Part shown: piece by piece, positions 41,701 to 64,000 of the stretch | Layout of the letters: each line of letters begins with the position of its first letter | Position numbering within the stretch: position 1 is the first letter of the stretch | Assembly: GCA_023213395.1 (NCBI GenBank) | Contig: CM041465.1 | Coordinates: 44,027,741-44,091,740, forward strand | Length of the DNA: 64,000 nucleotides | Source: Cycas panzhihuaensis | Lineage: Eukaryota; Plantae; Cycadophyta | Direction of reading: 5' to 3' | Position numbers and translations under genes: made by a program | The notes under the pieces: generated by a model | Seen by the model: only the letters and a program-made list of their open reading frames with translations | The model's database searches: none | What the model was told of the DNA's origin: nothing

Positions 41701-43971
41701 GCATTATGGGGTTGGTCACATTAACCGAGGGAAATTGCTTAAAGCTTGTTTTGATTTCTTATAAGATATGGAATATTATTTCTAAAGGATTTAACTATGT
41801 GTACAACATTGCTTCAAAAATAAAGAAAAACTTCTACCAAGGAGGTTGCAAAAATACTTGTTTAGATACTCATATTCAAGATGATCAAGGTATAGGTGAA
41901 ATTGTTGCATTTATTACTATCCTAACTTCACAAGTTTAAAACAATGAGAATTGGTTTATAAATTTAGATGTATCAAATCACATGATATGAAGAAAGGCTT
42001 GGTTTGAAAATCTTCAACCATACTCTCTCAATAAATCAATAGAACTAGGAGATAGTTTTCCTCTATGCATCAAAGGCAAAGGAACTATAGCTATAAAAAT
42101 AAATAATGAAATCAAGAAAATTGGAAATGACTTGTATGCTCTTGGCTTGAAGAAGAATCTCCTCTCTGTATATCAATTGAGAATGAAAAACCTTCACACT
42201 ATATTTGATGAAGATGATAAATGTTTCATTTATGACATAAAACAAACTGACCTTATAATTGTTAAAGGAACAGAGACTAATAATTTGTATAAATTGATTT
42301 CTACTCTTATTCAACCTTTTTCTGTTTACTTTCTAGCTATTCACAACTCAATCAATGTAATAGGAAGAAATGTAATAGGATCAACTCCTCAAGATGACTT
42401 AGTAGAAAAAATCTCTACTCCTATTCAGTATTTGGCTACTCACAGCTCAAATAATGAATTGTATCATTTACGATATGATCACATTGGAAATACTAGATTA
42501 GAAATGCTTAAAGTTTGAATATGGTAAATGGTCTACCTGATATCTCTTTTAATTCCTTTATTTGTGAAAGTTGCATTTTGGGAAAACATCACAAGTCACC
42601 ATTTCATGAAAGCACTTGGAAATCACAAGATATATTGGAGTTAATTCATAGTGACAAAAATGAGCTAATTACACTAACTTCTATTAATAGAAAAAAATAT
42701 TTTTTCAGCTTTATTGATGATTATACCAAGAAAACTTGGGTTTATTTTATCTTTAGCAAATCAAAAGCATTAGATACTTTGAAAGAATTCAAAGCTAAAG
42801 TTGAATTCAAAAGTAGGCATAAGATCAAAACTCTTAGAACAGATGGAGGAGGAGAATATGTCTCAAATGAATTTTACCATTTCTACCAAATTCATGGAAT
42901 TCGTAGACAACTTACCACTCTTTATACTCCTCAATAAAATGGAGTAGCAAAAAGGATGAATCAAACTATAACTAAGATGGCTATATGCATATTGAAATGA
43001 AAAAAAATGTATTTAACACATATTGGGCCAAAGCTGTTGACATAACTGTCTATCTCATAAATAGGAGTCCAACACAAGTCCTTGAAAAGCTAACTCTAGA
43101 GGAGAGCTAGACATGCAGGAAACTTGATGTAAGTCATCTTAAAGTCTTTGATAGTACAACCTATGTTTACATTCCTACTTAAAAGAGATCCAAGTTAGAT
43201 GACAAAAGCATTAAATGTAATTTTAATGGCGCATAATGAGAAATCCAAGGCCTAGAGGTATATAGATCCAAAAGATAATAAAGTCTATGTTAGCAAAGAT
43301 GTTATGTTTGAAGAAACATCAATAAAAAATGATTAGACACATATTTCCCAAAGTCCAATTCTCTTCAAGGAACCAGTAAAAGAATCTATACTCCAAGAAA
43401 AAGATATCTCTGATAAAAGTGACCAAGAAAATAGAAATCAAGAAGAAGACACTATAAGAGAAGATAACATTTCAACAAAATCTACCTCTAAAAAAGACAA
43501 CAAAAGTTTTTTTAGACAAATTGTTCAAAAGAAGCTCCCAAAGTGGTACCTAAAGATCGTAGAAGAATCAAAAGAAGATGTTTTTGAACAAAAGACAAGA
43601 TCTTAAAGGCATCAAGCCATGATTTGCACTGTAGAAATACAGAATTATGATAAAACTTATAACAATCTTAAATGCAAAAACACAATGGATGCAAAAATGA
43701 AGGTAATATATAGAAATAATACATGGAAACTTATTCCTCCACTAAGGGATAAATTTGTTGTAGGTTATAAATAAGTTTATAAAGTTAAAGAAAAGTTAGA
43801 TGGGAGTGTTGAAAATTTTAAGGCAAGGTTAGTAGCCAAAGGCCATACTCATATTGTAGGAATCAATTATGAGGAAATGTTCTCTCCAGTGGCAAAATTA
43901 ATAACAATCATAATTGTTATTACAATGGTAGTACATTTTGGATGGAAGTTCATTCAACCATATGTGGAAAG

Positions 43972-44570
43972 TGTAGCATTCCTAAAATAAAAAAGGAAGT
44001 CAGTTTTATAAGAGAAATTATTGTCATGAAATTAGTTTTTAAGAGAATTAAAAGAAGAATCATTTATTTTATTTTATTATGAAGTTGGTTTTATAGAGGG
44101 AAATTATGAGTTAGGTTTTGAAGGCTATAAATAAGGAAGCCTTTCCCATTTGCAAAACAAGTCTTAGAGGATTCTATATTGGTAGAATGGCTCTATGCCA
44201 TTAGGGCCTCGTGTTTGTTGGAGAGTCGCTCTAGGCTTGAAGAAGGTTCATCAACTGCTGAATAGTTGGATCAGGTGTTACTATTCTATTATTATTAATT
44301 CGTGATTTACATATGTTGTTGTTATCAATGTGTAAATGATATATATATTTGCTAAATCATGTTTTATGAGGGCTTATAATTGTAATTATATCCTATCTAT
44401 TACAAATGTATGAAATCCACTATGAAATACTATGATGAAACCCATTGAGATTTCTTCCCATTTTTGTTGTGGGATTGGTAGAGGCTAGAATAAGTTAGGA
44501 TATTTTATGCTCTCACTCTTATCTCTCAAATAAGAATCACATTCTAATACGAATTTAAGAATATCAACTT
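43972..44570 (+). repeat. Left inverted arm of K: LTR 43972-44404, filler, antisense integrase fragment
   Basis: Reverse complement aligns with 59681-59814 + 60358-60823. Confidence 0.92.
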
Positions 44571-45666
44571 GGTGGAGGAAGGTTGACACGGATATTTTTT
44601 CCAACCCCTAAGACTCCCTCAAAGTAGGATTAATAGGTTAATATGAAGATTTGTGGAATACAGATTACATTGCCTAGTTAACCAAATTACAATAATCAGG
44701 ACTAGTTTAAACATGCATAGAACAATTCCAAGCCCTCCAATGCCTGGTTACTAATTGAATACTAGTCGAACTCATTATTCAAACGTATATTGGTGGATAT
44801 AAGGGACCCATCAAATACTACATAAAGACAATGGGGGCCACAAATATGAGAGAAACCATCAAGCATGCAAAGAATATTGAAGCAGAGTATAGAGAATCTA
44901 GGCCTAATTACAATCAAAGAAGCGAATTGCCAGCCTACCAGAACTTTAGCTCCGACCCAAATTGGATTAGGTTAGGAACAAAAGTGGATCCCCCACTCAT
45001 GGGAAGAAGCACCAACGAAGTAAGCAGAGTATCAAGAGATGAACATCTTAAGAGAGGTACATGCTTTAAATACAGAGGAAAATGGTATAAAGACCATCAA
45101 TGCCCATCAAGGAAGGTCTTTATGATCCATAATAATGAAGTAACCATCCTAGAAGAAGAGCAAAAAGAAGAAAATATTCAAGAAGAGGATGAGGAGGTCA
45201 AGGTAGAGAAGCTTTTGGATTTAGACATGGAGAATGTGTAGATATCTGTGCAAGCCATCACATGACAGAGTAACTTGCCTCAAATATTACGATGCCAAGG
45301 GATGTTCCAAGTATCACCAGTCTCCATCCTCATTGATAGTAAGAGTAGCCACAATTTCATAAATTAACTTACTATGGAGAAATTGGGTCTACCCATTTAA
45401 GCGCTCAACGCTTTTCAGGTTGCCATTGCAAATGGAAAATCCACGATATATGGAGGTTATTGTCAAAAGGTGAGCTTTCACATCAATGATTATTCAATAA
45501 CCACCTGCATGTTTGCGATGCCAGTGGGAGGAGGCGATGTCATGCTAAGGGTACAATGGCTACAAACATTAGGATATGTAACCACTAATTTCAAAACATG
45601 TTTCATGAGTTTTTCATAGAAGGGACATCGTTATACACTGCAAGCACCCCCTAAACCCCAATGTAG

Positions 45667-48600
45667 TGTTAAACCTTTATGTTTAAATGTTAAGTGATGC
45701 ACTATATAATATTTTATTATTGTACTTTATGAACTTTATATTAGTGTGATTTATCACTTAAAGTGATAAAGTGCACACCCATATTCTTTCTAGTAACATA
45801 ACATTGTAACTTGAGGGTCAATGTACCTTTCATGCATCTTTGCTCACAAAAGAGCCTAAGGGACACTTGTTCCTCATACATTTAGCATACCTTGCATGTT
45901 TGACATTCGTCAAATATGCAGTCTTTCAAAGTCTCTCCTCATACTCTATATATTAAAACCAATTCTCATGTATGTAGATATGAGAGTGTGTAGTATTGTT
46001 ATGTTCTTAGTTTTGTTAATCAAGTATTCTTTCTTATTTGGAGGTTGGATCAATTCCTTCTCCTTCATATTGGTGTCCTCATGCTTGTGATCTTTATGAT
46101 TATGCTTGTTTATAGTGCTCATTTCCATACTAGCTTGAATAGATGCTAATCATCTTCATTCTCATAACAATCTTTCCTCTCTTTTAGATCCCAAAGACCT
46201 TAGGCTTAATGCCCCATTCTCAACATTTTGTATCAAAACCTTGTGAGAGGAGTTTTAATGCTAATTTTCTCATATTTCTGATAAGGTTACAAACCTTTGG
46301 TGACGACCTTTGCTCTATGAAGGTGATCCAAGGCTAAGTTTAGTCATTTTTTGTAGTTGCTCATTATCTTTTGGTTATTTGTAGGCTGGAGAATGATTAT
46401 TTCAAGTTCTATTTTTTTTAAGGCTCATTTCATTGAGTGCAACAACGAAATACCATTAAAATTAGTGTTTTTTAAAATTTTTCTGTAATAAAAAAAAAAA
46501 TTAAGGATTATTGGCAAATCTCGGGAGATTATTCGTTATCTGGCTGTGAATTAGTCTCTTATTCACTCTTCTCAGTTTGCAATTGACATGCAAAGAAAAC
46601 ATCACTGTTCTAGGCAGATTTTTCACTTGAAGGGCAATTTTTTTAAAACAGAAAATGCTTATTTCTTTTTAAACTGGCTAGTTGGACTCATTTTATTGAT
46701 CATTGTAGGTTGCATTAGCTCTTGAGAAGAGTTTTGAGGCTCTAAATTTGGTTTTTAAACCCTCTATTGTGTATGGCTACCATTCAAACAATTTTTAGCC
46801 ATGCGCCCAAATACGACCTTCTCTAATTTCAACCTCATTAAATACTCCACCATTCCTCATGAAACTTCAGAGGAATCTCCACATTAGTGCTCTAACCTTG
46901 TCTACAAAATTTCATCTTGATCGGATCATTATTCATCGAGTTCTATTCGATCGAACACTCGATCTATAACGTTGCCATCGTCCGGATCTTTTTCTCTAGA
47001 AAAATTTCATTTTTAAACTTCATAAATTAAACTTTAGGTTATGAAATTTAGAATATATCATAGAATATTCTATAATTAATAATCTTTAGTTTATAAAGTT
47101 TGTTAGCTTAAGTGATTTTTTATCTTATTTAATCACATTTTAATCAAATTTCAGCTTCTTTTTTATTTTTTGAAGTTCATAAATACGTTAAAAAAAATTG
47201 TAAATGTGTTTTTTTGACTTAAAAAATGAGATTTTAATGATATTTTGTAGTCCAAAATAATAGAAATTACATTGTCAGTGATTGTATAAGGCTCCCTACG
47301 AGGTGACCTTGATGCCCTAGTCATAAAAATAGGCTAAAATTCACTATTTTTTAATAAAATCACTTATTTTTTTATGTTGGTTAGGACTATTTGAAGTCCT
47401 AAGACTTTAGTGGTAATTGTCTACTTAGTACAAAGGGATTGAATTCAATATTAAGTGGTTAGTTTTTGTCATTAAAAATGAACCCTCTTTAGCGTTATAT
47501 TAAGCAAATAATTTCTCATTTTGGACACTTGGCACTTTTTTATGTCTTTAAGTGCTCTTACAAACAATTCATATGTTAAATTTCATGTACTCAATTACTT
47601 CATTTTGAAGCCATTTTTTGAGATATTAATTAGCATTATAAGTAGTAGCATTATACCCTTAAGTAAAATTTAACTAAGTCAACTTAAACTTTAATTTTAT
47701 ATATTTTAAATCTTGTGGGAAAGGCCTAAAAAAGGTTAAAATCTTGCCTCTATAATGTAAAACTTTGTGCATTCCCTATAGGACCAATTGATTATATGGT
47801 CAATGCAAGATAATTGACATTTCTTGGAGTAAAGGGGATTTGAAAATGGTGTTATTAGGGTTAAAAATTCTAAGGAAAGCACGGTACATCTATGCAAATC
47901 AACCTTATTTAGCCTTGTCCTAGATTTAGCTTGGTCAACTGTTAGATCTACTTATAAAGATCAAGGTTAGACCAACTCTTTGTCTAGTCCTCCAACCCCC
48001 ATCACTCTCTTTAGTTGTTAGAACTTTTAGTAAGATTAGGGGTGTTAGTGTGTTAGAAGGTGAAACTTAAGTGACGAAAGCTTTGAGTTTCCAAGTCATA
48101 TGTTAGCTTTAAGACTCTTTAATCAACTTGAACATAATGGTTGCCATCAACACACTTAATGCATGCACAATTAAATTAAATGGTTAAGATAACTATCAAG
48201 AATGGAAGTGATAAACTCAAAATCTATTAATCATGAATGAATTTTGGGGATTTGTTTCTGAAAAAAATCTCAAATCTATACTTGTGGAGAGTCCAATTGA
48301 TAGAGATATTCAACCTGATCCAATTTTAGATGCTGCTTGGGAAGTTGAGGATGAAATTACCTTAGCATTTTTGCATATGATTGTTGATGTGTATATAGAT
48401 CAAAATATTGCATGTGTTAAAACATCAAAAGAAGATTGGGATACTTTATCTTCATTGTATGAAAGGTAAGATGAAGCTCACATCATGATGATCAAAGCAA
48501 AGTTGTATTCTTTGGAATTTGTAAAGTCAATGTCGACATTCTTGTCTATTATCAAAGAGATTTATAATGAGTTAAATACTCTTAGCAAACTAGTTTCTAG

Positions 48601-51600
48601 AGATGAACTTATAACTTCAACTTTGCATACTTTGTCAAAAGAATATAATGGATTCATCTTATCAATTACTAAAGATGACACATTAGCTATTTTGAATTTC
48701 AATTAGTTTGAAAATCTCCTTCTTCAAGAAAAACAAATTTACCTGAGGCAAGAAGAACCATTTCAGGAGTTATTCATAGCCAAGTTCAAGGCTAAATAGA
48801 GTTCCAAGAAATTACTTCAAAATCAGTTCGGGAATATGAACATCAACACATCTAAAGCCAATGTAATCTATCATTGTTGTGATAAGGTGGCCCATATAGC
48901 TCATAAATATAGAAATAAGCAATCAAATATGCAGTAGCCATGTTAGCAACAACCTCATCAGTAATAATTTTAATAGCACCAGCAATAACAACAACCCCTT
49001 AGACCAAATCGAAGAGGTCAAAGAAGAAGGGGGGGCTTTAGAGGTGGCAATCAATGCCATACAAATCAATTTAAAGATGAAAATAATATGTTTTGTGCTT
49101 ATCACAATTCTAAAAGTAATAATACTTAGATAATTGATTCAGGGGCATTTCGGCATATGACTGGCGATAAAGAATTACTCTATAATATAAAAGAAAGAAG
49201 ATGGCAAACTATTACATTTTGTAACAATGAATCTGTTGAAATTTCTAGTATAGACAAAATTACCTCGTTTTATTCACCTAACAACACTATTTTCACATTT
49301 CCCACTAGAGATAACTACTTAATACCCTCAATGAAGAACAACCTCTTATTTGTTAGTCAATTAGACAAATAATAAATGAGTATTTTATTTAAAGGTGGGG
49401 AATGCACAATTAGTGACAAGAATGATCAAGTGATAGCCATTGGTCATAATGACTATAGACTTTATAAACTGGATGCATCAAATATTACACTTGATACTAC
49501 CTACTTTGTCACTCAATCTATGTCAAAAGATCAACTTTAATATAATAGACTATGCCACTTAAGCCTATAAAATAACAAAATGATATTTAATAAAAACATG
49601 GTGTATGGGCTTCCAAAGATATCTAGATCAAAGTGTCTTTGTGAAGCATGTATCATGGAGACTCAACATAGATAATATTTTCCTAAAAGCAATTCATGGC
49701 ATGCATCACAACCCTTGCTATTAATCCATACAGATTTATATGGACCCATGTCCACGGTATCCCTTAGAGGTGCTTTATATTATATAACCTTTATTGATGA
49801 TTTTTCACATAGAGTTTGGGTGTACTTCATCAAGCAAAAATTATAGGCATTTAAAAATTTTAAGGAATTCAAACTGAAGGTAGAAAATGAATATAAATAC
49901 TCAATCAAAATCTTGAGATCAGATAATGGAAGTGAATTTACCTTAAGGTAATTCAATCAATTTTGCAAAGATCATGGAACTAAGGAATAGCTCACTACTC
50001 CTTATATACCTCACTAGAATGGAGTTTCTAAGCATATAAATAGGACTTTGGTCGATAAAGCCAAAGCGATGATACATGCAAAAGGGTCACCTTGTTCGTA
50101 TTGGGCTGAAACTATTAACTTGATTCAAAGAAATAGAAGGCTGATGAGAGAACTCAAGAATTTTATTGAGAAGATGATCCCTTAAATATACAATCAGACT
50201 TATAACCATTATGACATGATTTGTAACCAACCTCTGAGGACATGACACATGTTACATTCACATGTGTGAGTTACATAATTAATGACTCTTTAGATAAAAC
50301 ATTACCTCCTAACACCCTCTCTTAATGTTTTATCTTTCTCAATCCTATCTTGTCTTTCAGAAATTGAAACTTTTCTTTTCCTAGTGACTTCGTCAATAGG
50401 TCTACAGTTTGTTCTGTAGTAGAGCAGTATTCTAACTTGATTTATTTATTGTGAACCTTTTTACTTATGAAGTGATGGTGAACTTCAATGTGCTTAGTTC
50501 TTGCATGAATAATAGGATTCTTGGTCAACTTGATAACACTCTAATTATCACAGTATAAAGTTGTTGTTTGGTTTTGAGGTTGGTTCAAATCGATCAGAAG
50601 TTGCCGAAGCCATCGCTTCACGAGTTGCGCTTCACGCTTTGTATTCTACTTTAGTTGAGAAGAGTACAACCGTTGATTATTTTTTACTGCACCATGAAAT
50701 TACAGTCAGTCCCAAGAAAAAATAGTAGCCACTAGTGAATTTTCTCTGCTCTTTGTCACCTGCACAACCCGAGTCATAATATCTTATGAGTTCTGCTAAT
50801 CCTTTCTATGAGTAGATCAATTTTAGTCCAATTGTTCCTCACAGATATGTCAGTATTCTCCAAGCAGCTTTCCAATGTATCACTTTGGATTCTTGCATAT
50901 ACTAGGAGATGACTTTGACTAAGTAACATATGTTAGGTCTGGTGGCTATGAGGTAAATCAAACTACCAATTAGTTGCCTATACAGAGTGACATCAATTGC
51001 TTGTTCTTTTTCATCTGCCACCAAGTCATAGTTGATTTCCATGGGTGTTGTACATGGATTGTAGTCTGTCATCCTGAATTTGCCCTGCAGATCCTTTATG
51101 TATTTACTTTGTGAGATGAAAATGTATTTTTGTTGTTGACTTACTTCCAATCCCAGATAATAGTTAAGAAGACCAAGATCTATCATTTCAAATTCCTTTT
51201 CTAACTGATCTTTTATTTCTATAATTGATTTATCATCATTTCCTGTGAGGATCATGTCATCTACATAAACAACAATTATGGTGATTAGACCACCTTTTTT
51301 CTTTGTGTATAGACTGGAATCTAAGCTGCAATGTTGAAATCCATTATTGCATAAGTGCTTATCTAGTTTGGCGCACCGGGCACGAGGGGCTTATTTCAGT
51401 CCATACAGGGCCTTTTTTAATTTGCACACCAACTATTCTTGTCCTTTCTTAATGTAACCCTCAAGTTGTGTATGTACATATCTTCTTCAAGATCTCCATT
51501 TAAGAATGCACTTTTTACATCTAACTAAAAATTTTTCCAGTTGTGTAACACTGCAAGACCTATCACTGTTCTTATTATGTCTATGTCTGCTACAAGTGAG

Positions 51601-54600
51601 AAGGTCTCTTCAAAGTCGATTCTGACTGTCTGTGTATATCCTTTAGTAATAAGACGAGCTATGTGTTTCTCGATTTTCCTATTAGCCCCTTCTTTGACCT
51701 TATATACCCATCTACAATTAACTATGGGTTTGTTTGGAGGAAGTTCTACCAGTTCCCATGTTTAATTTCTAACAATTGAATCTATAACTACCTTCCGTTT
51801 TGGTTGATCTTGAGCCTCCTAGAAGGATTAAGGTTTAGTTCTGTTGAGCAGAGCTTTTGGTTTTTGACTCCTTGTTTTATGGTCAAGTACACTTCCTCCT
51901 TCTTCAATAGTCTTGATGAACCATTTGGGCACTTTCTTTTCTTTTCTTGAGTCTTCTCTTGTTTCTAAGAGTTCTGAATGAGATTCTACTTCCTATGTTG
52001 AATTTCCTTCTTCACCCAAATCTATGTGAGATGAACATAATGGAACTTCTTCAGTGATAATGTCTGAAATCTCTTCTGTGAAGAATTCTTTATTTGAACT
52101 CTCTGTTTCTCCTTCAATTATTTTGATTTGGGGTTGAAGATCTAAGCTTTCTTCATTAAAAACTACATCTTTGCTAACATATATCTTATTTGTTTTTGGA
52201 TGAATGCATTTATAAGCTTTTGAATTCTTACTATACCCTATTATAATGCATTCTATACTTTTTGCATCAATTTTTGATCTTCTTTTATCTGGTATGTGTA
52301 CATAAACTTGACTACCAAACACTTTAAGGGAACTAACATTACGTTTCTTACCTATCCATGCTTCCTCAGGTGTGACGTTCTCCAGAGCTTTAGTTGGACT
52401 TCTGTTTATAAGGTAGCAAGCTATATTAACTGCTTCTGCCCAATATGATTTCAAAACCTGCCTTTCATGTACCATGCTATGAACCATTTCCATCAAGGTT
52501 CTATTTTTTCTTTCAACAACACCATTGGATTGTGGAGTGTAGGGTATGGTGATTTGTCTCCAAATCTTATTCCTCTTGCAATAGGTTAGGAATTCATTAG
52601 AGATGTACTCTCCTCCTCCATCTGATCTGATATATTTTATTTTGGTTTCTGACTTGAGTTCTACCTCTGCTTTAAATTCTTTGAAGATTTCAAAAACTTC
52701 CGATTTGTTATGTAAAAAGTATACCTAGACTTTTCTAGTGAAATCATCAATGAAAGTTAGGAAATACCTACAACCATTTATTGAAAGTGGTGTGAGTGGT
52801 CCACAAAGATCTGTATGAATCAATTCCAATTTGTTTTGTGTCCTTCATTTACTTTCTTTGAAGGGTAGTCTATGATGTTTTCCAAATTGGCATCCTTTAC
52901 AAACAAAATTTTTCAAAGAAATGTGAGGCAATCCATGCACCATATCATGTTTTTTCATTTGTTTTAATGTTTCTATTGGTAGGTGCCCGTACTTCAAATG
53001 TCACATTTTATTATCAGAATTCACAACATAACAAGCTTTTGGACTCAGACTGGGTATTACAGGATTTGAGACTAATTTATACAGATCATTGCTCCTAATA
53101 CCTTTTGCAATTATTTCTCCATTGTTTTTCATATCTAATATGTGGCAGAGACCATATTCATCAAACATAGTTCTTAGCCCATTTTTACTAAGTTGTGAGA
53201 TAGATAAAAGATTCACTTTGAGGTTAGGGACCAACAGAACATTTCTAATTTTCTTTACATTACCCCATATGTTGATAGAGATAGTACCCACTTCCTTAAT
53301 TTCAAGTGGATACTTATCACCTAATTCTACTGATTTGTTGATGTCACAAGGTCTCAAGATTTCAAACCAGTCTTAGCAATTCATCATGTCGCAAAGTTCC
53401 AGAGTCAATGAAACATATATCTGTTTCCTTTAATCCTGCTAACAATACAACAATAAATGTTATTTCTTCCTCTTCTTCTTCAACTTGTTCTTTGTTATAG
53501 CTGCCCATAGATCTTTTCCCCCTCTTAATGCCTGCTCTCCTTTGAGGACATTGATAGGGATAATGTCCTAATTATTCACAATGGTAACATACATCGAACG
53601 CTCTGCAAGCACTGGCAAAATGCCCAGACCTGCCACAGTTGAAACATATCTTTGAGTCTCTACCTCGTCTGCGTCCTCTGTTATCTAAATAATGACCACA
53701 AGCAAAACTCCTAGAGTCTAGAGTTTGTCCCCTTCCACGTGACTGACTTCGTCCTTGAGATCCTAGATTTAATCTAGAAGCAAAGTCATCTTCCAGTTCT
53801 GCTAAGTCTTCATACCGCCTGTTTCTCTGTTCTTGCCTTACCAATATTCCAGTCAACTGGTCAAGGGTCATTGTATCAATCTTATTACTATTTGTGATGG
53901 TGTTGATGGTTACATTAAAGGTCTTTGGCAATTTATTGGATACCATCTAAACAAGTTCAGGTTCAGGTAGAATTTCTCTAGCACTTAAGAGTCAATTTCT
54001 AAATGGAGCGACCTTATATATAAAGTCAACCAGTGTTTTATGCTCTTTCTTATGTAACTTATATAATTCTTCCTTTAGGGCAAACATCTGAGCCTTATTT
54101 TTCTGACCAAATAGATTTTTAAAGCACTTCCAAATAGCTGATGTTGAGGTCAATTTTTCTACATATACTAAGAGGGGGTCGAAAACAAACAATTTAAGAA
54201 TGATTACTCCCACATTATCTCTTTCCAACCGACTAGGTAAGGTTGTGCTAGCATCATCAGGCTTGGTTTCAGTTCCAAGTGCAATATTCCAAGCATTCTA
54301 GGCCCTGAGAAGAGTTTCAATTTTTATTTTCTAGATATAATAATTATTATCAGTGAGTTTGCCTTGCTCAGAGAGACCATAGAGTGGCACAACCATTATT
54401 AATAAAGAGAGAGAAATTTGGACTAGTTTGACCATATAATTATACAGATTTTCATACAAAACCCTAGGTGTACGTACAAGGACAAAGAATATCTTAAAAG
54501 AGAGGTCTTTTCACCCTCAACACAGATCTGAGATCAGTTTCAAGAAATATCTTTCTGATTTGAAGAAAACAACCTCAAAAAAATCGAACAGATGACTAGG

Positions 54601-57600
54601 ATTTTAGCACGTTTAGGCTTAAATCTTTTAAAACTTTTTATAAAACTAGACAAAATTGGGTCTAAACATTTAGTAACAAAGAATTGAAGCTTTTGGGATA
54701 GTCTTTACCCAAATTCAGACGAGATTTTACTTTCAATCAATTATTTTCTCTCTAATCCTGCACAAACTGGTCTTTGCTCGATTTGGCCCTTGAAATGATT
54801 TCAAACATCTTCGAGTCAGTAAAGAATGTTAACGAGTGTTCTCTGATCTATCTATCAACCAAATTTTATCTCATTCTGAGGACTTTGAAAATTTGACATC
54901 TCAGATCAAGTTTAGTACCTGATTAATTAATGCTTCATTTCCGTACTAGAGAGCCTTCCAGACTTGCCTTCCTTCTTGAACCCTTGATTTTATCTTCAGC
55001 GGTTAAGATTTCTTCTTTCAAATAAGCAGTCACACATGTTCTGATATCATGTTAACTTGATTCAAAGAAACAAAAGGCTGATGAAAGAACTCAACAATTT
55101 TATTGAGAAGATGATCCCTTAAATATACAATCAGACTTGTAACCGTTATGACATGATTTGTAACCAATCTCTGAGGACATGACACGTCACATTCACGTGT
55201 GAGTTACATAATTAATGACTCTTTAGATAAAACATTGCCTCATAACATAAGCATTCAACATAACAATCTATGTGGTAAATAAGAGTCCAACTACAATAAT
55301 CATCGACATCACACCAAAAAAGGCTTGGTCTGGCAAAACCCGAGTTAGGTAAAAATAGTCTTAAATGTATTTTTGTTGGTTATGTTATTCACAGCAAAGC
55401 ATATACGATACATGATCCCAATGTCAAGAAAATGCATGTATTTAGAGATGTAATCTTTGCTAAATACAGTGAGTAATTGGAGTTTGCATCTATTTAGCCT
55501 CTTACTGAAAAAAGCAAGTAGATTATTGAGGATTTCCTTCTTTCATAATCATCTACACTATGCACATCTTCTGCACCTGTTGTTTCTTCATCTACTTTAG
55601 CTCTAACTACTTTAGATTTAGCTCCACTTGATCTTGGTTCTTCCTTTATTGATCAACCATTATGACCAGAGGCTATTGAGGTTCAATTTACATCTATCAA
55701 AAAGCTACCTAAATGGTATACATAGATGGTGAAAGATAACCAAGTCATAGAAGGAAAATGTTCATCCAAGATAAGGCAGCAGACAAACTATGCACATAGA
55801 TGAAGTGTTCTGTGTTCATGAGCCTTCCACTTTTGAGGAGGCATATAAAAGTGAAAAGTGGAAAGTTGCCATGGATGAAGAAATCCATTTTATTGAAAAG
55901 AATGGAACATGGGATTTGGTGGAATTACCTAAAAACAAATAGGCAATCAGTTATAAATGAGTTTATAAAACCAAACTCCACTCTAATAGTTTAATCGAAC
56001 ATCATAATGCTTAACTTGTTATACAAGGTTTCAAACAGAAAGAATACATTGATTATGAGAAGATCTTTGCATCAATAGCAAACATAAATACCATCCTACT
56101 CATTTTGGCCTTAACTGCTAAATGCAAGTGACCAATCTACTAGATGGACGTGGAGAGCGCCTTTCTCAATGACGATTTTTAAGAGGAGGTATATTTAGAG
56201 CAACCTCCTGATTACATTATACAAGGCAAAGAGCATTTGTATGTCACCTAAAGAAGGCTTTGTATGGATTAAAACAGGCTCCTAAAGCATGGTACTCTAA
56301 AATTGATAATTAATTTTTTAGACATGGATATCATCGATCCACATCATATACTAACTTGTATATAAAATTTAGAGAGAACCATGTAGTCTTTGTGGTCTTG
56401 TATGTTGATAACTTAGTTATCACTAGAAATGACACTAAAATGATAAGAAATTCTCCAAGGTGATCTTAAAAGGAGTTTTGAGATGACTGATCTTGGACTA
56501 ACCCATTATTTCTTAGGCTTAGAGGTATGGCAACAGGCAGGTCATATTTTCATCTCTCAAGTAAAATATTCTTGAGACATTTTGCAGTGTTTCAAAATGG
56601 AGAACTATAAACCAACGCCTACACTTATGGAGAATGGTATTAAGTTAATACTTGATAAGGAGATAGAACCAACAAATCCCACTTTGTATCAATAACTAAT
56701 TGGTAGCCTAATTTACCTCACAAATACTAGATCGAACATTTCATTTGTAGTTGAGATTTATTCCAGATACATGTCTCAGCCTAATCAGAAACATTGGAAT
56801 GCAACAAAGCATATATTTAGATACATCAAAGGTAAATTGCAATATAGCCTTCAGTATACTTATAATGAGAACTTCATCTTGAAGGAGTTCTTAGATTCTG
56901 ATTGGGTAGGTTGCCAAGATAATTGTAGATCGACCTCGAGAGATATTGTTTCATCATTAGTTCAAGAGTCATTTCATGGAGTTACAAGAAATGACATGAT
57001 GTTACCTTGTCATCCATAGAAGTAGAGTACAAAGCTACAATCATCTTAGCTTGTGAGGTTATTTGGCTAAGGAGGATTTTTAGAGCTTAGACTTGAGAAG
57101 AATCACCCCACCAAGCTATATTACGATAATCAAAATATGCTCAAGTTAACTAAGAATCCAATTTTTCATGCACGGACCAAGCACATAGAGATTCGTCACC
57201 ATTTTACCAGGGAACATGTTCAAAACAGTGAGATCAACCTCTTGTTCAGGCCCACGAACCAACATATTGTAAATATCTTTATCAAGCCACTTAGTAGAGA
57301 GAAATTTGAGAAATTCAGATATGCTCTTAGTGTCCAACTTAATATTATAAACATTAAAGTGGGAGAGGGTGTTAAACATTTATATTTAAATGCTAAGTGA
57401 TGTGCTATATAATTATTTTATTATTGTACTTTATGAACTTTATGTTAATGTGACTTATCACTTAAAGTGATAAAGTGCATACCTACATTCTTTCTAGTGA
57501 TATAACATTGTAACTTGAGGGTCAATGTACCCCTCTTGCATCTTTGCTCACAACAGAGCCCAAGGGACACTTATCCCTTATGCATCTGGCATACTTTGTA

Positions 57601-57928
57601 TGTTTGACATTTGTTAAACATGCAGTCTCTCAAAGTCTCTCCTCATAGTCTATATATAGAGACTAATTCTCATGTATGTAGATATGAGAGTGTGTAGTAT
57701 TGCTATGCTGCTAGTTTTGCTAATCAAGTATTTTTTCTTATTTGGAGATTGGATTAATTAATTCTCCTCCATATTGGTGTCCTCATGCTTATGATCTTTA
57801 TGATTATGCTTTCTCATAGTACTCATTCCATACTAGCTTGAATAGATGTTAATAATCTTCATTCTCATAGCAACCTTTCATCTCATTTAGATCCTAAAGG
57901 CCTTAAGCTTAATGCCCAATTATCAACA
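45667..57928 (+). mobile_element. Copia I, full length, inserted in K between protease and RT
   Basis: 559-bp LTRs 45667-46225 and 57370-57928, perfect TSD TGTAG, decayed PBS, PPT AAAGTGGGAGAGGG, gag ATG 48137, pol at 49130-50112 and 55253-57350. Confidence 0.96.
50113..55247 (-). mobile_element. Copia L, full length (5.1 kb), inserted in the integrase of I
   Basis: ~200-bp LTRs 50113-50314 and 55050-55247, PBS TGATATCAGAAC, PPT TTAAGAGAGGG, TSD GAAAC/TAAGC (restores WAEAFN); gag ATG 54396 with two CCHC knuckles. Confidence 0.95.
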
Positions 57929-59814
57929 TGTAGTTGGTGGCATCCCATTGCATGGAGAAGATGTTGGAGAAGAATCCATCAACATACATAATAACGTACT
58001 ATAAGATCACAATAAAGGACATTCTAATGGATATACAAGAAGTCATAAACCAATACAATTTAGTGTTCGAGGAACCCCTACTAGGACTTCCCCTCGATCG
58101 TGGATGCCAACACGCCATCGGACTAGTACTAAGAGATGCACTGGTCAACATTTGTCCTTACTAGCATCCCTACTAATTAAAGAGGGAAATCATGAAAATA
58201 ACCAAAGAGGTCTTACACCAACCATATATTGCAAACAACACAAGCCCATTTGCATCCCCAATTATACTCAAGTGAAAAAAAAATGGGGCCTACTGTATGT
58301 GTGTTGACTAATAAATGATTGAATAAGATCATTATCAAGAATTGCTATCCCATCCCATGAATAAATGATTTGTTAGATGAAATACACGGCGAAATATTTT
58401 TCAAAGATCCGTCTTTAATAGGAATACTACCAGATCTGTATCAAAATAAAGGACATGCACAAAATAGCTTTCTGCACTCATGAGAGGTTGTTCGAATTCA
58501 GAGTTATGCCATTTGGTCTAAAAAATGTACCGACAATGTTCCTGAACACAATGAATACCATACTAAAACCCCTCTTATAGATATTTATGCTAGTTTTGTT
58601 TGACAACATTATAATCTATAGAACAACATGGAAGGAACACTTAGAGCAGATCAAGTCTGCTTTCTAGATCTTAAAGAGCAATCAACCTTTTGCAAACAAG
58701 AAAAAATGTATATTCGAGAAAGTGGAGCTCAAATATATGGGATACATTATTTCGCAAGAAGGGATCAAGATGGATCCCAAGAAGGTCTAAGCCACTATTA
58801 ATTGGCCCACTCCCAAGAATGCCATAGGGGTCAGGGCTTTCTTAAGTGCAATAAGATTTCTTAGGAAGTTTATCAAGGGGTATACTTACATTGCATCATT
58901 TCTAACTGATCTCATGAAGAAGGATGTAATCACTTAGAACCTCTTAATAGAGGACACTTTCCGGGGTTTCAAAAGGAAAATGATCATTTCCCTTATACTT
59001 GCAACTCTAGATTTTTCTTAGCCATTCACCTTAGAGTGTGATGCATCAAAAACTAGGATAAAAGCAGTCCTCCTCTAAAATGATTGACCACTAGCATACA
59101 AAATTCAAAAGCTAAACTGCAAGGAATGACTCAAACCTATTTGTGACAAAGAGATGCTTGCAATCATGCATGTTATTCATCAGTGATACCAATATTTGCT
59201 AGGGAATAGATTTGTGGTCAAAACAGATCACGACAACCTCAAATACTTCCTTAACTAGAAGAATCTCTCATATGAACAACAAAAATGGGTAATTAAGATT
59301 TAAACATTCAATTTCAGTATTTTATATAAAAATGGCAAAGAGAATATGATTGTAGATGTATTATTATAGATACCCAAAGACAACGGTGGCGAGATCTCAC
59401 TGCAAGAAATAATAGTAGCTAACTCTTAGCTGGACACACAAACTAATATATGACTACCAGAATGACCCTCTCTTGGAGAAGATATTGGAAGAGATTAAGA
59501 ACCAAGGAAGAACTAAGTATAATCTACAAGGAGGCTTGATTCTACAGAAGGAGAAAATATTTATTCCAGCATCATCTAAACTAAAAGAGATGCTACTAGA
59601 AAAAGTGCATTCTATGATGAGTGCAGGGATCGACAAAATCTATCACAAGATATGGGACTCCTTCTTTTAGAAAGGGATGAAATTCGATGTTCTTAAATTC
59701 ATATTGGAATGTGATTCTTGTTCGAAAACTAAGAGTGAGAGCATAAAAAGTCTTGGCTTACTCCATCCTCAACCAATCCCACAGCAAAAATGGGAAGAAA
59801 TCTCAATGGATTTC

Positions 59815-60352
59815 TGTTAAACCTTATGTTTACATGTTAAGTATGTACTTTATTCTTTCATTCATTATTTTGTACTTTATGGGGTGACTAATCACTTAAG
59901 TGATAAAGTGCACACCCACTTTCATCCTAGTGACATAACATTGTAACTAAAGGGTCAAATGGATCCTCATACATTTTTTCTTACTTGAGAGCCTAATGGA
60001 CACATGTCCCTCATGCATGACATGCAAGCCATGCATTGCATGTACCTTGGATGTTTGCCACTTGGCAAACATCCAATGGTGTTAGGTAACCTCAATTACT
60101 CTATATATTGAGACCTCTCATCATGTCTCACATGTAGAGTTGAAGTGTAACGTTATGCTGCCATTTTGCTAATCAATTGGTATTCTTTGGAGTAGGACTA
60201 ATTCCTCCTCCTCACACCTTGGTATCATTTTGCTTCCTTGATCTTGCTTATCTTAATTTTACTTTTATGTTATTTAGAGCTAGAGGTGAACTATCTTCAA
60301 GATCTTTGCTTTATAGGTCTTAAGCACTTTAATCCTTTGACCTTTTCTCACA
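59815..60352 (+). repeat. Solo LTR (538 bp) related to the Copia I LTRs
   Basis: TGTTAAACC...CTCACA with perfect TSD ATTTC, inserted in the K integrase within the right arm. Confidence 0.93.
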
Positions 60353-60389
60353 ATTTCATCACAATATTTCATAGTGGATTTTATACATT

Positions 60390-60823
60390 TATAACAGATA
60401 GGATATGATTACAGTAGTAAACCCTCATAAAACATGATTCAACAGAGATATGTATTATTCATACATTAATAGTAATAACATATGTAAATTGTGAATTAAT
60501 AATAATAGAATAGTAGCACCTAATATAAATGTCTAACAGTTGGTGAACCCTCTTTGAGGTGAAGGTGACCCTCCAGTAAGCACGAGGCCCTAGTGGCACG
60601 AAGTCATTTTATCGATATATAGAATTCTCCAAGACTTGTTTAATAAAGATGGAAAGCTACTATATTTATAGCCTTCAAAACCCAACTCATAATTTTCCTC
60701 CAAAAAAATAACTTCATAATAAAATAAAATAAATGATTCGTCTTTTAATTCTCCTAAAAATTGACTTCATGATAATAATTTCTCTTATAAACAGACTTCC
60801 TTTTTTATTTTAGGAATGCTACA
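60390..60823 (-). repeat. Inverted LTR of K (right arm)
   Basis: 434 bp, reverse complement of 43972-44404. Confidence 0.92.
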
Positions 60824-63187
60824 AAATATATCTTCTTAAATGGAGACATGGATGAAGAAGTATATACGAAACAACCTCCTGGGTATACAAAGGAAGGTGA
60901 AGAACATCTAGTATGCAAATAAAAAAAGATATTATATAGACTAAAACAAACACCTCAAGTATGATATACAAAATTAGATCATTATCTCAGACAAAATAGT
61001 ATTAATAAGTGTAAATTAGATCTAAGCTTGTATACAAAAATTTGAGAAAATAGTTTAATCACCATAATTGTTGTATATATAGATAATATGATTGGTACAT
61101 GTAGTGATCAAAAATCAATTGATTGGGTAAAAACTCAAATGGAAAATGAGTTTGAAATGACAGATATGGACCTCTTACATTATTATCTTAGTATTGATGT
61201 AAGTCAAAAAAATAATTTTATTTTTATATCTCAATCAAAATATATTAAGAATCTACTAAAAAGGTTCAATATGGAAGATTGCAATGCTTGTACCACACCA
61301 ATGGAAGTAAGATGTGTTCTAACGGCAGAAGAAAATAATCAAAAGATGAATGTCAAGATAGGCAACTTGTTGGAAGTCTTATCTATCTAATGATAACCAA
61401 ACCAAATATATCATATTCTATTGGAATAATTTCTAGATACATGCATGCTCCAAAGATTATCCATTGGAATGCATCTAAAAGAATTTTAAGATACATCAAA
61501 AACACTTTAAATCTGGGATTAAATTATACCAAAGCTATTGATTTCATATTGAAAGGATACAATGACTCTAATTGGGCTAAAGAGCAACAAGAAAGTTTAT
61601 ATCTAAATATTGCCTCACCCTAGGATCAACAATAATATCTTGGAGTAGTAAAAAAAAACCAACGGTTGCCTTCTCATCAATAAAAGTAGAATACAAAGCA
61701 ACAGTAAGTGCTACTTGTAAAACAATATGGTTAAAGTAGTTGCTTAAAGATTTAAGATAAGGAACCTCTAAATCAACTATAATATTTTGCGACAACCAGA
61801 GTGTTATCAATTTAACAAAAACCCTATCTTTTATACAAGAATAAAACACATCAAAGTTCGTCGTTATTTCGTTTGAGAGAAGATTCAAGTTAAAGAAATT
61901 GAGCTTCAATACTGCAATAATGAACTTTAACAGGTAGATATCTTTACTAAGTCATTACCAAAAGACAAGTTCCTGTATCTTAAAAGTTTACTAGAAGTCC
62001 AAAACAAAGTATAAAACATTGAGGAAGGGATATTTATTAAAGGTTTTTACCTTTGTTCCAAATTTTAGATATCATTGTTACAAATTTAAAGCAATGGAGA
62101 GTTTGGATTAAGAATGTTGAAATATTGATGTATTGGAAATGTGCATTATGGGAGGATGTTAGAATAATGTATATTTGACCAAGTAATATGCATTTGACCT
62201 TTTGACCAGATAATCTACAAATAGTGGGTCCCTTATAAATGCTACCTTGTACTATATAAGGACATCATCTCTTTATCATTTGTATATCATGTCATGTGAG
62301 ATCATTTTGTATTATTATCTTGTTCTGTCAATACAATGAAGGTATCATTTGATCCAAGTATTTTCTATGATGTTTGTGTTATATTATTTTATTATTTTGT
62401 TTAATATTATATTAGTATATAAGATTTCAACACTTGCTACTTGAAGCCTTTTATTATAAGTTGAACTTTGTATTTGTCTACAAATCTGACTAATTTGAAC
62501 TTTTTCCTATAGATCTATTTGCATCCAATTGCATGCTTGTCAGCAAGTAATTTAACCAAATCCCATGTGTAGTTCTTCTTGGCAGCTTGGATTTCAATCA
62601 CTATAGTGTCATTCCACTTCTACTCTTTGATTACTATTCCAATCATTGATGGTTCATCTGCATCTAATACACATGCCATAAGAGCCATGATCACCTATTT
62701 AGAATGTCATAATTTTGACTTTTACTTTCCCTTAGAATTAAGTAACAGTTTCTTAATGTCCTCCACAGGGTTCATATACCATTTTGGAAGCTTCTTCTTA
62801 AAGATGAAGGTAACGAATTAGATAACTTCTCTAGCTCCAGCTTTAGTTTTTTTTCAATATCTTCTCAGATTTAACTTTTGAAAACTGAAAAGATTCAAAT
62901 TCTACTTCTTCAACTATGTCAAACATCTCATATTCAGGTTGAACAATATCACATGAAGTACTGCATTCAAGCGGCGACTTTACTTAATCCTCAACCTCAA
63001 CTGAACCAGCATTTTGAATCTCACCTTCTCGAAAAATAACATCATGAGTTATATGAACTTTTTGAGTCAATAAATTGTATACTTTGCATAGTTTGTTTTC
63101 CTTAGAGTATCCAACAAGGATGTATTATGTGCTTTTATCTTCCAACTTTCATCGTTTCTCTTTTGGACTATGTATGTATGATTTACA

Positions 63188-63770: not shown

Positions 63771-64000
63771 TGTTAAACCTTATGTTTAAATGTTAAGTGA
63801 ATGTACATTTATTTTTCATGTAATATATGCACTTTATACTTTAGGGGTGACTTATCACTTAAGTGATAAAGTGCACACCCACATTCTTTCTAGTGACACA
63901 ACGTTGTCACAAAAGGGTCAATGGACCCTCATGCACTTGTTTGAATATTCCAAGTGATGTATCTTGGATGTTTGACACTTATCAAACATCCAAGGCCTTA
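63771..64000 (+). repeat. Start of another LTR of the I/solo-LTR group
   Basis: TGTTAAACCTTATGTTTAAATGTTAAGT...TCACTTAAGTGATAAAGTGCACACCC. Confidence 0.9.

Follow-up and report, generated by a model that had tools for sequence, protein, structure and literature searches.

In the 64-kb stretch of Cycas panzhihuaensis DNA analysed here (the window), a Copia element on the plus strand (40099-62432), bounded by LTRs at 40099-40390 and 62157-62432 and retaining a PBS (40391-40402) and a PPT immediately before 62157, has its RT gene split by a 16.85 kb block with inverted LTR-like ends. The TSD of this host Copia element is itself decayed (TTTAC/CTTGC, three of five positions agreeing). Both the RVT_2 profile and four paralogous Copia RTs in the window show that the flanks of the block are the two halves of one Copia RT gene with an exact overlap of 5 nt: the left flank ends at approximately RVT_2 profile position 85, and in the right flank residues K and Y correspond to positions 84 and 85 and residue I to position 86. 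Since the host RT halves overlap by 5 nt, the whole block appears to fill one integrase-type target site. This places on a profile scale what the preliminary description of this DNA had reported, namely that the host RT rejoins in frame once 5 bp are removed. It had also called the two copies of the target, GAAAG (43967-43971) and AAATA (60824-60828), poorly matching, and they do agree at only two of five positions; at the divergence of the two arms, three or more differences have a probability of about 0.04-0.06.

Once a solo LTR at 59815-60352 is set aside, positions 43972-44567 are the reverse complement of 60358-60823 together with 59684-59814. The outer segment, 43972-44440, pairs inversely with 60823-60354 (82.5%, E 4e-114), and the inner segment, 44437-44565, pairs inversely with 59814-59686 (85%, E 7e-32). 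Without the solo LTR the arms are 596 and 597 nt long and are 82.9% identical over 595 alignment columns, the differences consisting of 83 transitions, 19 transversions, and three gap columns. The inverted repeat at 43972-60823 is therefore confirmed, as is the earlier observation that the first 30 bp are the exact reverse complement of the last 30 bp (30 of 30 terminal bases match). Both termini read TGTAGC..., which gives ...GCTACA-3' ends on both sides. The symmetry of about 600 bp that had been described is likewise borne out by the arm lengths and identity, but the limits assigned within it, a 433-bp LTR followed by a 26-bp filler, are no more than a guess from TG..CA, there being no direct copy by which to fix the LTR ends. 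With those limits, the left LTR-like part spans 43972-44404 (433 bp, TGTAGC...ATTACA), its reverse complement on the right spans 60390-60823 (434 bp), and the inner part of the left arm, 44431-44567, is a minus-strand copy of the integrase N-terminus running from the end of the zinc finger to ISM[G/D]F. Within the 64-kb window there is no second copy of the arm, direct copies included, and no second copy of either of the two junctions described below.

The first junction, J1, is the filler between the LTR-like part and the antisense integrase (44405-44430, 26 bp), which is neither a PBS nor a PPT and contains a 12-nt stutter (44409-44435) repeating the adjoining integrase codons. The right arm carries the corresponding copy at 60358-60389, comprising the end of the MDFIT codons and the filler in reverse complement, and because both arms have the same J1, stutter included, J1 is older than the duplication that produced the arms. 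MDFIT lies only about 30 nt away from the LTR-like part, and a 32-residue piece reading through the filler (MDFIT...HSGF.TF..DRI) had no match in Pfam or the PDB. At the second junction, J2 (44565-44570), antisense integrase meets sense gag, and arm homology stops at 44567.

Between the arms the coding content runs one way, with gag, protease, RT, RNase H, and the integrase N-terminus all on the plus strand in the order typical of Ty3/gypsy elements. Gag (44568-45240) is partial, lacks its N-terminal part and leader, and has a decayed CCHC knuckle. That it begins mid-domain, as previously stated, is supported by the protein P0006, which aligns to the gag/protease region (tblastn, E 3e-17) and whose offset puts the break at 44567/44568 inside the Retrotrans_gag capsid domain, roughly 12 residues from its start. 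Positions 44678-45613 align with residues 297-596 of P0007, a gag-protease protein of Carya (tblastn, E 2e-28), and the protease (45266-45616) is collinear with that of P0007. The Pfam matches are weak and each is below cut-off alone, although they are collinear: RVP_2 at 45266-45616, RVT_1 at 58422-58577 (E 2.5e-5), and Integrase_H2C2 at 59671-59817. The RT and RNase H region (57935-59418) is heavily frame-shifted, and the integrase N-terminal region (59419-59814) continues to ISMDF, its last portion (59684-59814) being the inner part of the right arm. Taken with the two protein alignments, these collinear matches substantiate the PR-RT-RH-INT series ending at MDFIT that had been read from the sequence. 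Also upheld is the claimed absence of a PBS, a PPT, and the integrase core: no tRNA-iMet PBS lies next to either arm within two mismatches and the filler has no TGG, no purine run of at least 9 occurs at the inner LTR edges, and the search for the catalytic core (rve) gave no match. Beyond the window, an exhaustive phmmer search of the gag ORF against 1.8 billion representatives returned 11 weak matches, none close enough for the same family, and a word search with this ORF within its length band returned none. A conserved 20-mer from the LTR hit 15 metagenome loci by seed only, which is chance, and a conserved integrase 25-mer had no match among viral contigs. Another gypsy remnant lies near 7686 in the window but is too remote for use as a protein reference.

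Most of the length of the block is due to later insertions, and 4.04 kb remain when these are subtracted. A second Copia element, B (45667-57929, plus strand), which is not part of the inverted-LTR element, has 560-bp LTRs and a perfect TSD (TGTAG, 45662-45666 and 57930-57934). Within it lies Copia C (50115-55247, minus strand) with LTRs of about 200 bp and a PBS at 55038-55049 on the minus strand, and the solo LTR in the right arm (plus strand) is from a B-type family and has a perfect TSD of its own (ATTTC, 59810-59814 and 60353-60357). Because B and the solo LTR have perfect TSDs, the inverted structure is older than these nests and is very probably neither a recent event nor one of assembly. 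The K2P divergences, 0.145 for the host LTRs, 0.203 for the arms, 0.122 for Copia B, and 0.053 for Copia C, agree with the nesting order. The intervals for host and arms overlap, and the excess of the arms over the host LTRs is marginal (+0.059, one-sided P 0.045). On a rice-type clock, the insertion would date to some 6-8 million years ago.

In vivo, the integrases of LTR retrotransposons and retroviruses are taken to bring together the U3 end and the U5 end of the same cDNA molecule, and the pairing of like ends is known mainly from in vitro assays, in which retroviral intasomes form on two identical ends, whether U5 or U3, and integrate them in concert. Based on the architecture described above, we put forward as the probable reading that the locus is an old, dead Ty3/gypsy (chromovirus-like) fossil, in which an integrase placed a defective cDNA of about 4.0 kb, terminating on both sides in the same LTR end, into one staggered 5-bp target in the Copia RT gene. 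Most likely this was a one-off same-end integration rather than a new kind of mobile element. As the element has no terminal direct R repeats, PBS, PPT, or integrase core, it is unable to transpose again. The preliminary description had proposed insertion via two U3 ends. A single unit inserted through two like ends is upheld by the 5-nt overlap of the flanks, the shared TGTAGC termini, and the order of divergences, but the assignment to U3 goes back to one TATAAAT box, and we consider it more likely, on mechanistic grounds, that the outer ends are U5. The natural intermediates of reverse transcription have an LTR followed by antisense pol only if the outer end is U5. TATA-like motifs can be read on either strand of the arms, and three conserved AATAAA motifs are found only in the reading opposite to that of TATAAAT. 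The direction of TATAAAT, the best conserved of the motifs, favours U3 outside.

We propose that, with U5 on the outside, the right arm would represent the ordinary 3' end of a source RNA from which the integrase core, the C-terminus, and the PPT region had been deleted at J1. Concerted joining to the target would then have involved two incomplete reverse transcripts of this RNA, both double-stranded at the LTR end and both with a minus strand extending beyond it as a 3' tail. Of these tails, which faced one another, one would have ended 140 nt into integrase and the other mid-gag, and they could have been fused at J2 by microhomology-mediated end joining carried out by the host. Copy-back of a single minus strand would be an alternative route to the same product. 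Because the arms exceed the host LTRs in divergence, the extra +0.059 fits two non-identical templates better than a self-copy. Some points weigh against same-end integration of this kind: a source RNA with no PPT would yield duplex LTR ends inefficiently, and the target 5-mers show the low agreement given above.

A possible, though clearly less probable, explanation keeps U3 on the outside. Here plus-strand strong-stop DNA would have jumped to sense integrase RNA and been folded or copied back, and the resulting panhandle would have been integrated via its two U3 ends. The conserved TATAAAT, which reads inward from outer to inner and sits in each arm at 155 nt from the outer end, is as expected of U3 outside, two U3 ends would give the same single-insertion geometry as two U5 ends, and U3/U3 concerted integration is established to work in vitro. 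However, the filler is not a tRNA copy: it contains no TGG and no iMet PBS, its deviations from a PBS are common to both arms, and it partly repeats integrase codons. The conserved AATAAA motifs fit only the opposite reading, and a sense LTR joined to antisense pol corresponds to no natural intermediate. Moreover, a lone fold-back strand offers one duplex end, and for that reason it would need extra steps before integrase could use it.

The remaining explanations dispense with same-end insertion, treat it as the habit of a family, or question the locus itself. It is unlikely that a conventional or internally deleted insertion was rearranged afterwards, with break-repair fold-back copying, inversion, or gene conversion swapping its 5' part for the inverted 3' end. 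The J1 stutter does look like templated repair, but the end of the inverted arm coincides exactly with the LTR terminus and exactly with the host junction offset by 5 nt, the target 5-mer has no complementary microhomology that could prime copying, and on topological grounds an outer LTR edge cannot be flipped by homologous recombination, whether between LTRs or between nested copies. By similar reasoning we rejected recombination between nested or neighbouring copies, inversion with internal breakpoints, and autointegration circles, which either cannot set an inverted LTR terminus at the 5-nt-offset host junction or give J1 only once.

That the locus is one of a spreading family or class of inverted-LTR elements, occupying many sites and each with a TSD of its own, we regard as very unlikely. 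The slightly higher divergence of the arms than of the host LTRs may indicate that more than one source copy carried J1, but the window holds no second arm, J1, or J2, and the gag search found only the 11 weak relatives. An inverted-LTR class is mechanistically unlikely, since its transcript would lack R repeats at the ends and both PBS and PPT are absent, and with the integrase core missing as well standard retrotransposition is impossible. Recurrence of J1 and J2 with TSDs of their own would point to a family that multiplies in a non-standard manner, for example by trans-mobilisation through like ends, an outcome to which we give very little weight. More likely than such a family is that same-end concerted integration, whether U5/U5 or U3/U3, may happen repeatedly in vivo in this genome, which would have left many fossils, each of which might supply hairpin RNA against its own family. 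Least probable of all is an assembly artefact in which two copies were joined head to head, as the arms differ at 17% of sites and are effectively unique sequence, the interior holds nested insertions bounded by TSDs, and the host RT is back in register on the far side of the 16.85 kb.

The locus shares with chromovirus-like Ty3/gypsy elements (Metaviridae) the gag-PR-RT-RH-INT order, a zinc finger followed by ISMDFI, TG..CA termini, and a 5-bp target offset, but it differs in that its gag is N-terminally truncated, the PBS, PPT, integrase core, and chromodomain are missing, and its terminal repeats are inverted and so lack the direct orientation of LTRs in that group. It resembles like-end integration in vitro in having two copies of one LTR end and a normal stagger, whereas the donors in those test-tube or structural set-ups are separate molecules and the Cycas locus would be a natural product formed in vivo in a plant. 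A TIR DNA transposon (MULE, Pack-MULE, or foldback) was rejected, the overlap being 5 nt rather than the 9-11 bp of MULEs and the inner part of the right arm being continuous with the RH-INT coding region. DIRS elements, which have an internal complementary region, produce no TSD. DIRS-type retrotransposons do share inverted terminal repeats with the locus, but the resemblance is one of form only, as they use a tyrosine recombinase (PMC7192593; PMC3950715) and the Cycas locus has remnants of the DDE-integrase type and a 5-nt offset. A DIRS-like identity was rejected given the Integrase_H2C2 remnant with ISMDF, the 5-nt overlap of the host flanks, and the lack of a recombinase match in any piece. 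Aberrant cDNAs can integrate as one unit with TSDs (Sabot and Schulman, 2007; PMC1950507), and the complex LTR insertions attributed to abnormal template switching (PMC1950507; in rice, bioRxiv 10.1101/452573) are like the Cycas locus in being aberrant products with a single TSD (a putative one in the Cycas locus), like outer LTR ends, and a normal integrase. Those insertions, however, have three direct LTRs and two complete cores, in contrast to the inverted LTRs and truncated interior found here, and inverted arrangements are not mentioned in either report. In full-text searches of the literature, inverted LTRs were discussed only for DIRS elements, and no paper turned up that described integrase-type elements having both inverted LTRs and a TSD, or U3-U3 or U5-U5 integration in vivo.

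Taken alone, one decayed fossil whose TSD copies match poorly is a curiosity, and the locus is most likely a rare fossil of a faulty insertion. A natural insertion with one target offset and the same LTR end on both sides would constitute direct genomic evidence for like-end integration in cells, and the locus would also record the salvage of incomplete reverse transcripts by host repair. A systematic count of such loci could measure how frequent the event is and which end is preferred. The built-in inverted repeat, judged from its sequence, is also a candidate hairpin source that might feed RNA silencing of the family. In this respect it is similar to the inverted duplications of the Mu killer type, which share the inverted partial duplication and the possible hairpin RNA directed against a family, but Mu killer arose by rearrangement of a DNA transposon and the Cycas locus derives from a retroelement.

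The element at 43972-60823, a Ty3/gypsy derivative lying within the RT gene of a Copia element, carries its two LTR-like arms in inverted orientation. In a self-comparison of the window, 43972-44440 pairs in reverse complement with 60354-60823 (82.5%, E 4e-114) and 44437-44565 does so with 59686-59814 (85%, E 7e-32), and the stretch that interrupts the right arm, 59815-60352 (538 bp), is a solo LTR. With this removed, the arms measure 596 and 597 nt, and their alignment of 595 columns contains 83 transitions, 19 transversions, and 3 gap columns (82.9% identity), which bears out the arm symmetry reported in the preliminary description, as well as its observation that the outermost 30 bases of one arm are the exact reverse complement of those of the other. 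This terminal identity needs no special cause, since the long identical runs in the alignment sit in stretches made up of A and T only and most of the differences are transitions that affect G/C sites. The window as a whole is AT-rich (about 30-36% GC), with the nested LTR retrotransposons of a plant-type repeat landscape.

Without its nested insertions the element is 4,041 bp long, with two 596-nt arms flanking a unique interior of ~2.85 kb. The left arm consists of a 433-bp non-coding LTR-like part (TGTAGC...ATTACA), whose inner limit at 44404 is a guess from the TG..CA pattern because no direct copy delimits the LTR, a “filler” of ~26 nt inward of it, and 137 nt of antisense integrase N-terminus that extends from the zinc-finger end to ISM[G/D]F. 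We refer to the junction of these three parts, found in both arms, as J1, and to the switch from antisense integrase to sense gag, at 44567/44568, as J2. Residues 297-596 of the gag-protease protein P0007 from Carya align to 44678-45613 (E 2e-28) and residues 129-421 of a second protein, P0006, align to 44663-45616 (E 3e-17). By offset from P0006, in which the Pfam Retrotrans_gag domain occupies residues 86-174, J2 lies ~12 residues inside the capsid domain, so that the gag start had been placed roughly correctly as mid-domain; Gag lacks its N-terminal part, and the leader is missing altogether. The protease region (45266-45616, weak RVP_2 matches) is interrupted by a nested Copia, termed B, after which the sense reading resumes, much frame-shifted, with the RT (58422-58577, RVT_1 match, E 2.5e-5), the RNase H region between RT and the integrase zinc finger, and the zinc finger itself (59671-59817, Integrase_H2C2 match). 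This is followed by ISMDF and, 3′ of it, by the solo LTR, the filler, and the inverted LTR-like arm. The integrase core is absent, with only ~30 nt between MDFIT and the arm and no rve match; no tRNA-iMet PBS was found beside either arm at up to 2 mismatches, in a search that recovers the PBS of the host Copia and of a further nested Copia, C; and there is no purine run of 9 or more at the inner arm edges that would represent a PPT. All three absences had been noted previously and were confirmed by these direct checks.

Both flanks of the element are parts of one decayed but complete Copia (40099-62432), with LTRs of 292 and 276 bp, the PBS TGGTATTAGAGC immediately 3′ of the 5′ LTR, and the PPT GGGAGGA immediately 5′ of the 3′ LTR. 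The left flank reaches about position 85 of the RVT_2 profile, while in the right flank a residue I corresponds to position 86 and the two residues before it to positions 84 and 85, and four further Copia RTs of the window are ungapped here (...DVK[ST]-[AIT]FLNGD...). Based on these profile positions and the four paralogs, the host flanks overlap by exactly 5 nt, matching the stagger at which LTR-retrotransposon integrases cut. The preliminary description had rejoined the host RT by removing 5 bp, and the exact overlap agrees with this, although the two target 5-mers, GAAAG and AAATA, do match poorly (2/5 positions), the chance of at least three differences at the divergence of the arms being about 0.04-0.06. 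The paralogs carry AA[AG]A[GC] at this site, from which one copy at the element differs at one position and the other at two. The TSD of the host Copia, which provides a calibration for the erosion of a 5-bp TSD at comparable age, has itself decayed to 3/5 (TTTAC/CTTGC). In view of the paralog state and the decay of the host TSD, we give the geometry of the overlap more weight than the letters of the 5-mers.

Any route to this structure must be considered in light of the outer edge of each arm, which is an exact LTR terminus at the exact 5-nt-offset host junction. By reasoning, homologous recombination between LTRs or nested inverted copies never inverts the outer portion of an LTR, inversion with internal breakpoints would carry the LTR off the host junction, and autointegration yields circles or J1 only once; for break-repair copying, the target 5-mer lacks complementary microhomology from which an inverted copy could be primed. 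As these routes fail, what would remain is the integration of a DNA, or a pair of DNAs, presenting the same LTR end twice. For retroviral intasomes, concerted integration by like ends (U5/U5 or U3/U3) occurs in vitro. The core of the earlier proposal, that one unit was integrated by like ends, is thus supported by the LTR termini at the 5-nt-offset junction and by the failure of the other routes.

The motifs within the arms leave it undecided which end of the LTR faces outward. TATAAAT, at position 155, is conserved in both arms and reads from the outer end inward, but it is TATA-like in reverse complement too, and the left arm has additional TATAAAA motifs on the opposite strand. Three tandem AATAAA motifs are conserved in both arms in the inner-to-outer reading only, ~50-60 nt past the box and ~90 nt from the terminus, a placement that would correspond in that reading to the classical U3-R-U5 layout. 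The previous assignment of two U3 ends relied on the TATA box, and with TATA-like motifs on both strands and AATAAA in the opposite reading it is not supported. In reverse transcription, a strand that begins at its 5′ end with an LTR terminus and continues into antisense pol is the minus strand, and this terminus is U5. We therefore prefer, by inference from this mechanism, the integration of two molecules by their U5 ends. With U5 outermost, the right arm would represent a regular 3′ end that carries an internal deletion (J1), and the substrates would be incomplete reverse transcripts, each comprising a duplex LTR with a minus-strand 3′ tail. Were two such transcripts inserted through their U5 ends in a concerted reaction, a 3′ tail on one strand would face a 3′ tail on the other, much as at a resected double-strand break, and microhomology-mediated end joining with fill-in would then generate J2. 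Integration by two U3 ends is credible but the less probable of the two: the conserved TATAAAT does read from outer to inner, but the sense LTR would be fused to antisense integrase, and this needs an extra exotic step copied into both arms. The fold-back (panhandle) route suggested earlier is not supported, in that a lone fold-back strand offers a single duplex end, and integrase could use it only after its second strand had been synthesized in full.

The filler at J1 contains 2.5 copies of a 12-nt unit (44409-44435, TRF), with a right-arm counterpart in 60358-60389, and in both arms the 13 nt adjoining the LTR-like part nearly duplicate the MDFIT integrase codons ~24 nt away. In a shuffle test the repeat gave P of about 0.04 in the left arm and was not significant in the right, where the test sequence was one base short. 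An origin as a tRNA copy is ruled out, as there is no TGG and the departures from the iMet PBS are common to both arms. The filler resembles a polymerase stutter made at an illegitimate junction, which may have arisen by slippage or templated insertion. Alternatively, it may be a decayed integrase frame running ~17 codons past MDFIT (MDFIT...SGF.TF..DR); the 32-aa piece translated through the filler matched nothing in Pfam or PDB.

We consider it very improbable that the element represents a propagating, multi-copy class with inverted LTRs. It lacks the terminal direct R repeats, PBS, and PPT needed for standard retrotransposition, and within the 64-kb window no second copy of the arm, J1, or J2 was found. 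The public collections scanned yielded no relatives, and a full-text literature search on inverted LTRs returned only DIRS elements and one unrelated mention. The TSD-flanked complex elements that Sabot and Schulman (PMC1950507) attribute to template switching have LTRs that are all direct, whereas the LTR-like arms here are inverted; a rice preprint on abnormal elements makes no mention of inverted forms (bioRxiv 10.1101/452573), and a search for like-end integration in vivo found no paper. The element is an unusual form of a known kind of retrotransposon and a single decayed fossil.

Copia B (45667-57929, 12.26 kb), which cuts the protease region, has LTRs at 45667-46226 and 57370-57929 and a perfect TSD, TGTAG. 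Within it, three levels deep, lies Copia C (50115-55247, minus strand), with ~200-bp LTRs of approximate limits and a PBS at 55038-55049. The solo LTR of the right arm belongs to the B LTR family (77-79% similar to the B LTRs; perfect TSD ATTTC), and a further fragment of this family lies near the window end (63771-63942). The proximity of a full element, a solo LTR, and an LTR fragment to the gypsy element suggests that the B family was repeatedly active after the gypsy insertion. The K2P values are 0.145 (0.095-0.199) for the host LTRs, 0.203 (95% interval 0.163-0.247) for the arms, 0.122 for the B LTRs, and 0.053 for the C LTRs. B is clearly younger than the arms, the order of B then C is consistent with the nesting, and C is the youngest layer at the locus. 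Divergence is marginally higher between the arms than between the LTRs of the enclosing host (+0.059, one-sided bootstrap P 0.045), and since both pairs have much the same number of transitions per G/C column (0.367 in the arms, 0.356 in the host), the excess could reflect noise or chance, rate variation such as faster decay of inverted repeats (e.g., by stronger methylation), or arms that were non-identical at insertion, possibly from two non-identical templates. With a rough rice-type rate of 1.3e-8 per site per year, the insertion would be about 6-8 million years old, again a rough estimate.

A Copia RT/RNase H remnant (38832-39986, minus strand) lies just upstream of the host 5′ LTR in the opposite orientation. 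A different gypsy-type integrase remnant, of the W-GLDFIGP type, lies at ~7600-7830 (plus strand) and is too distant for protein alignment with the element. At 337 aa, the ORF at 34634-35647 (minus strand) is the longest intact one in the window.
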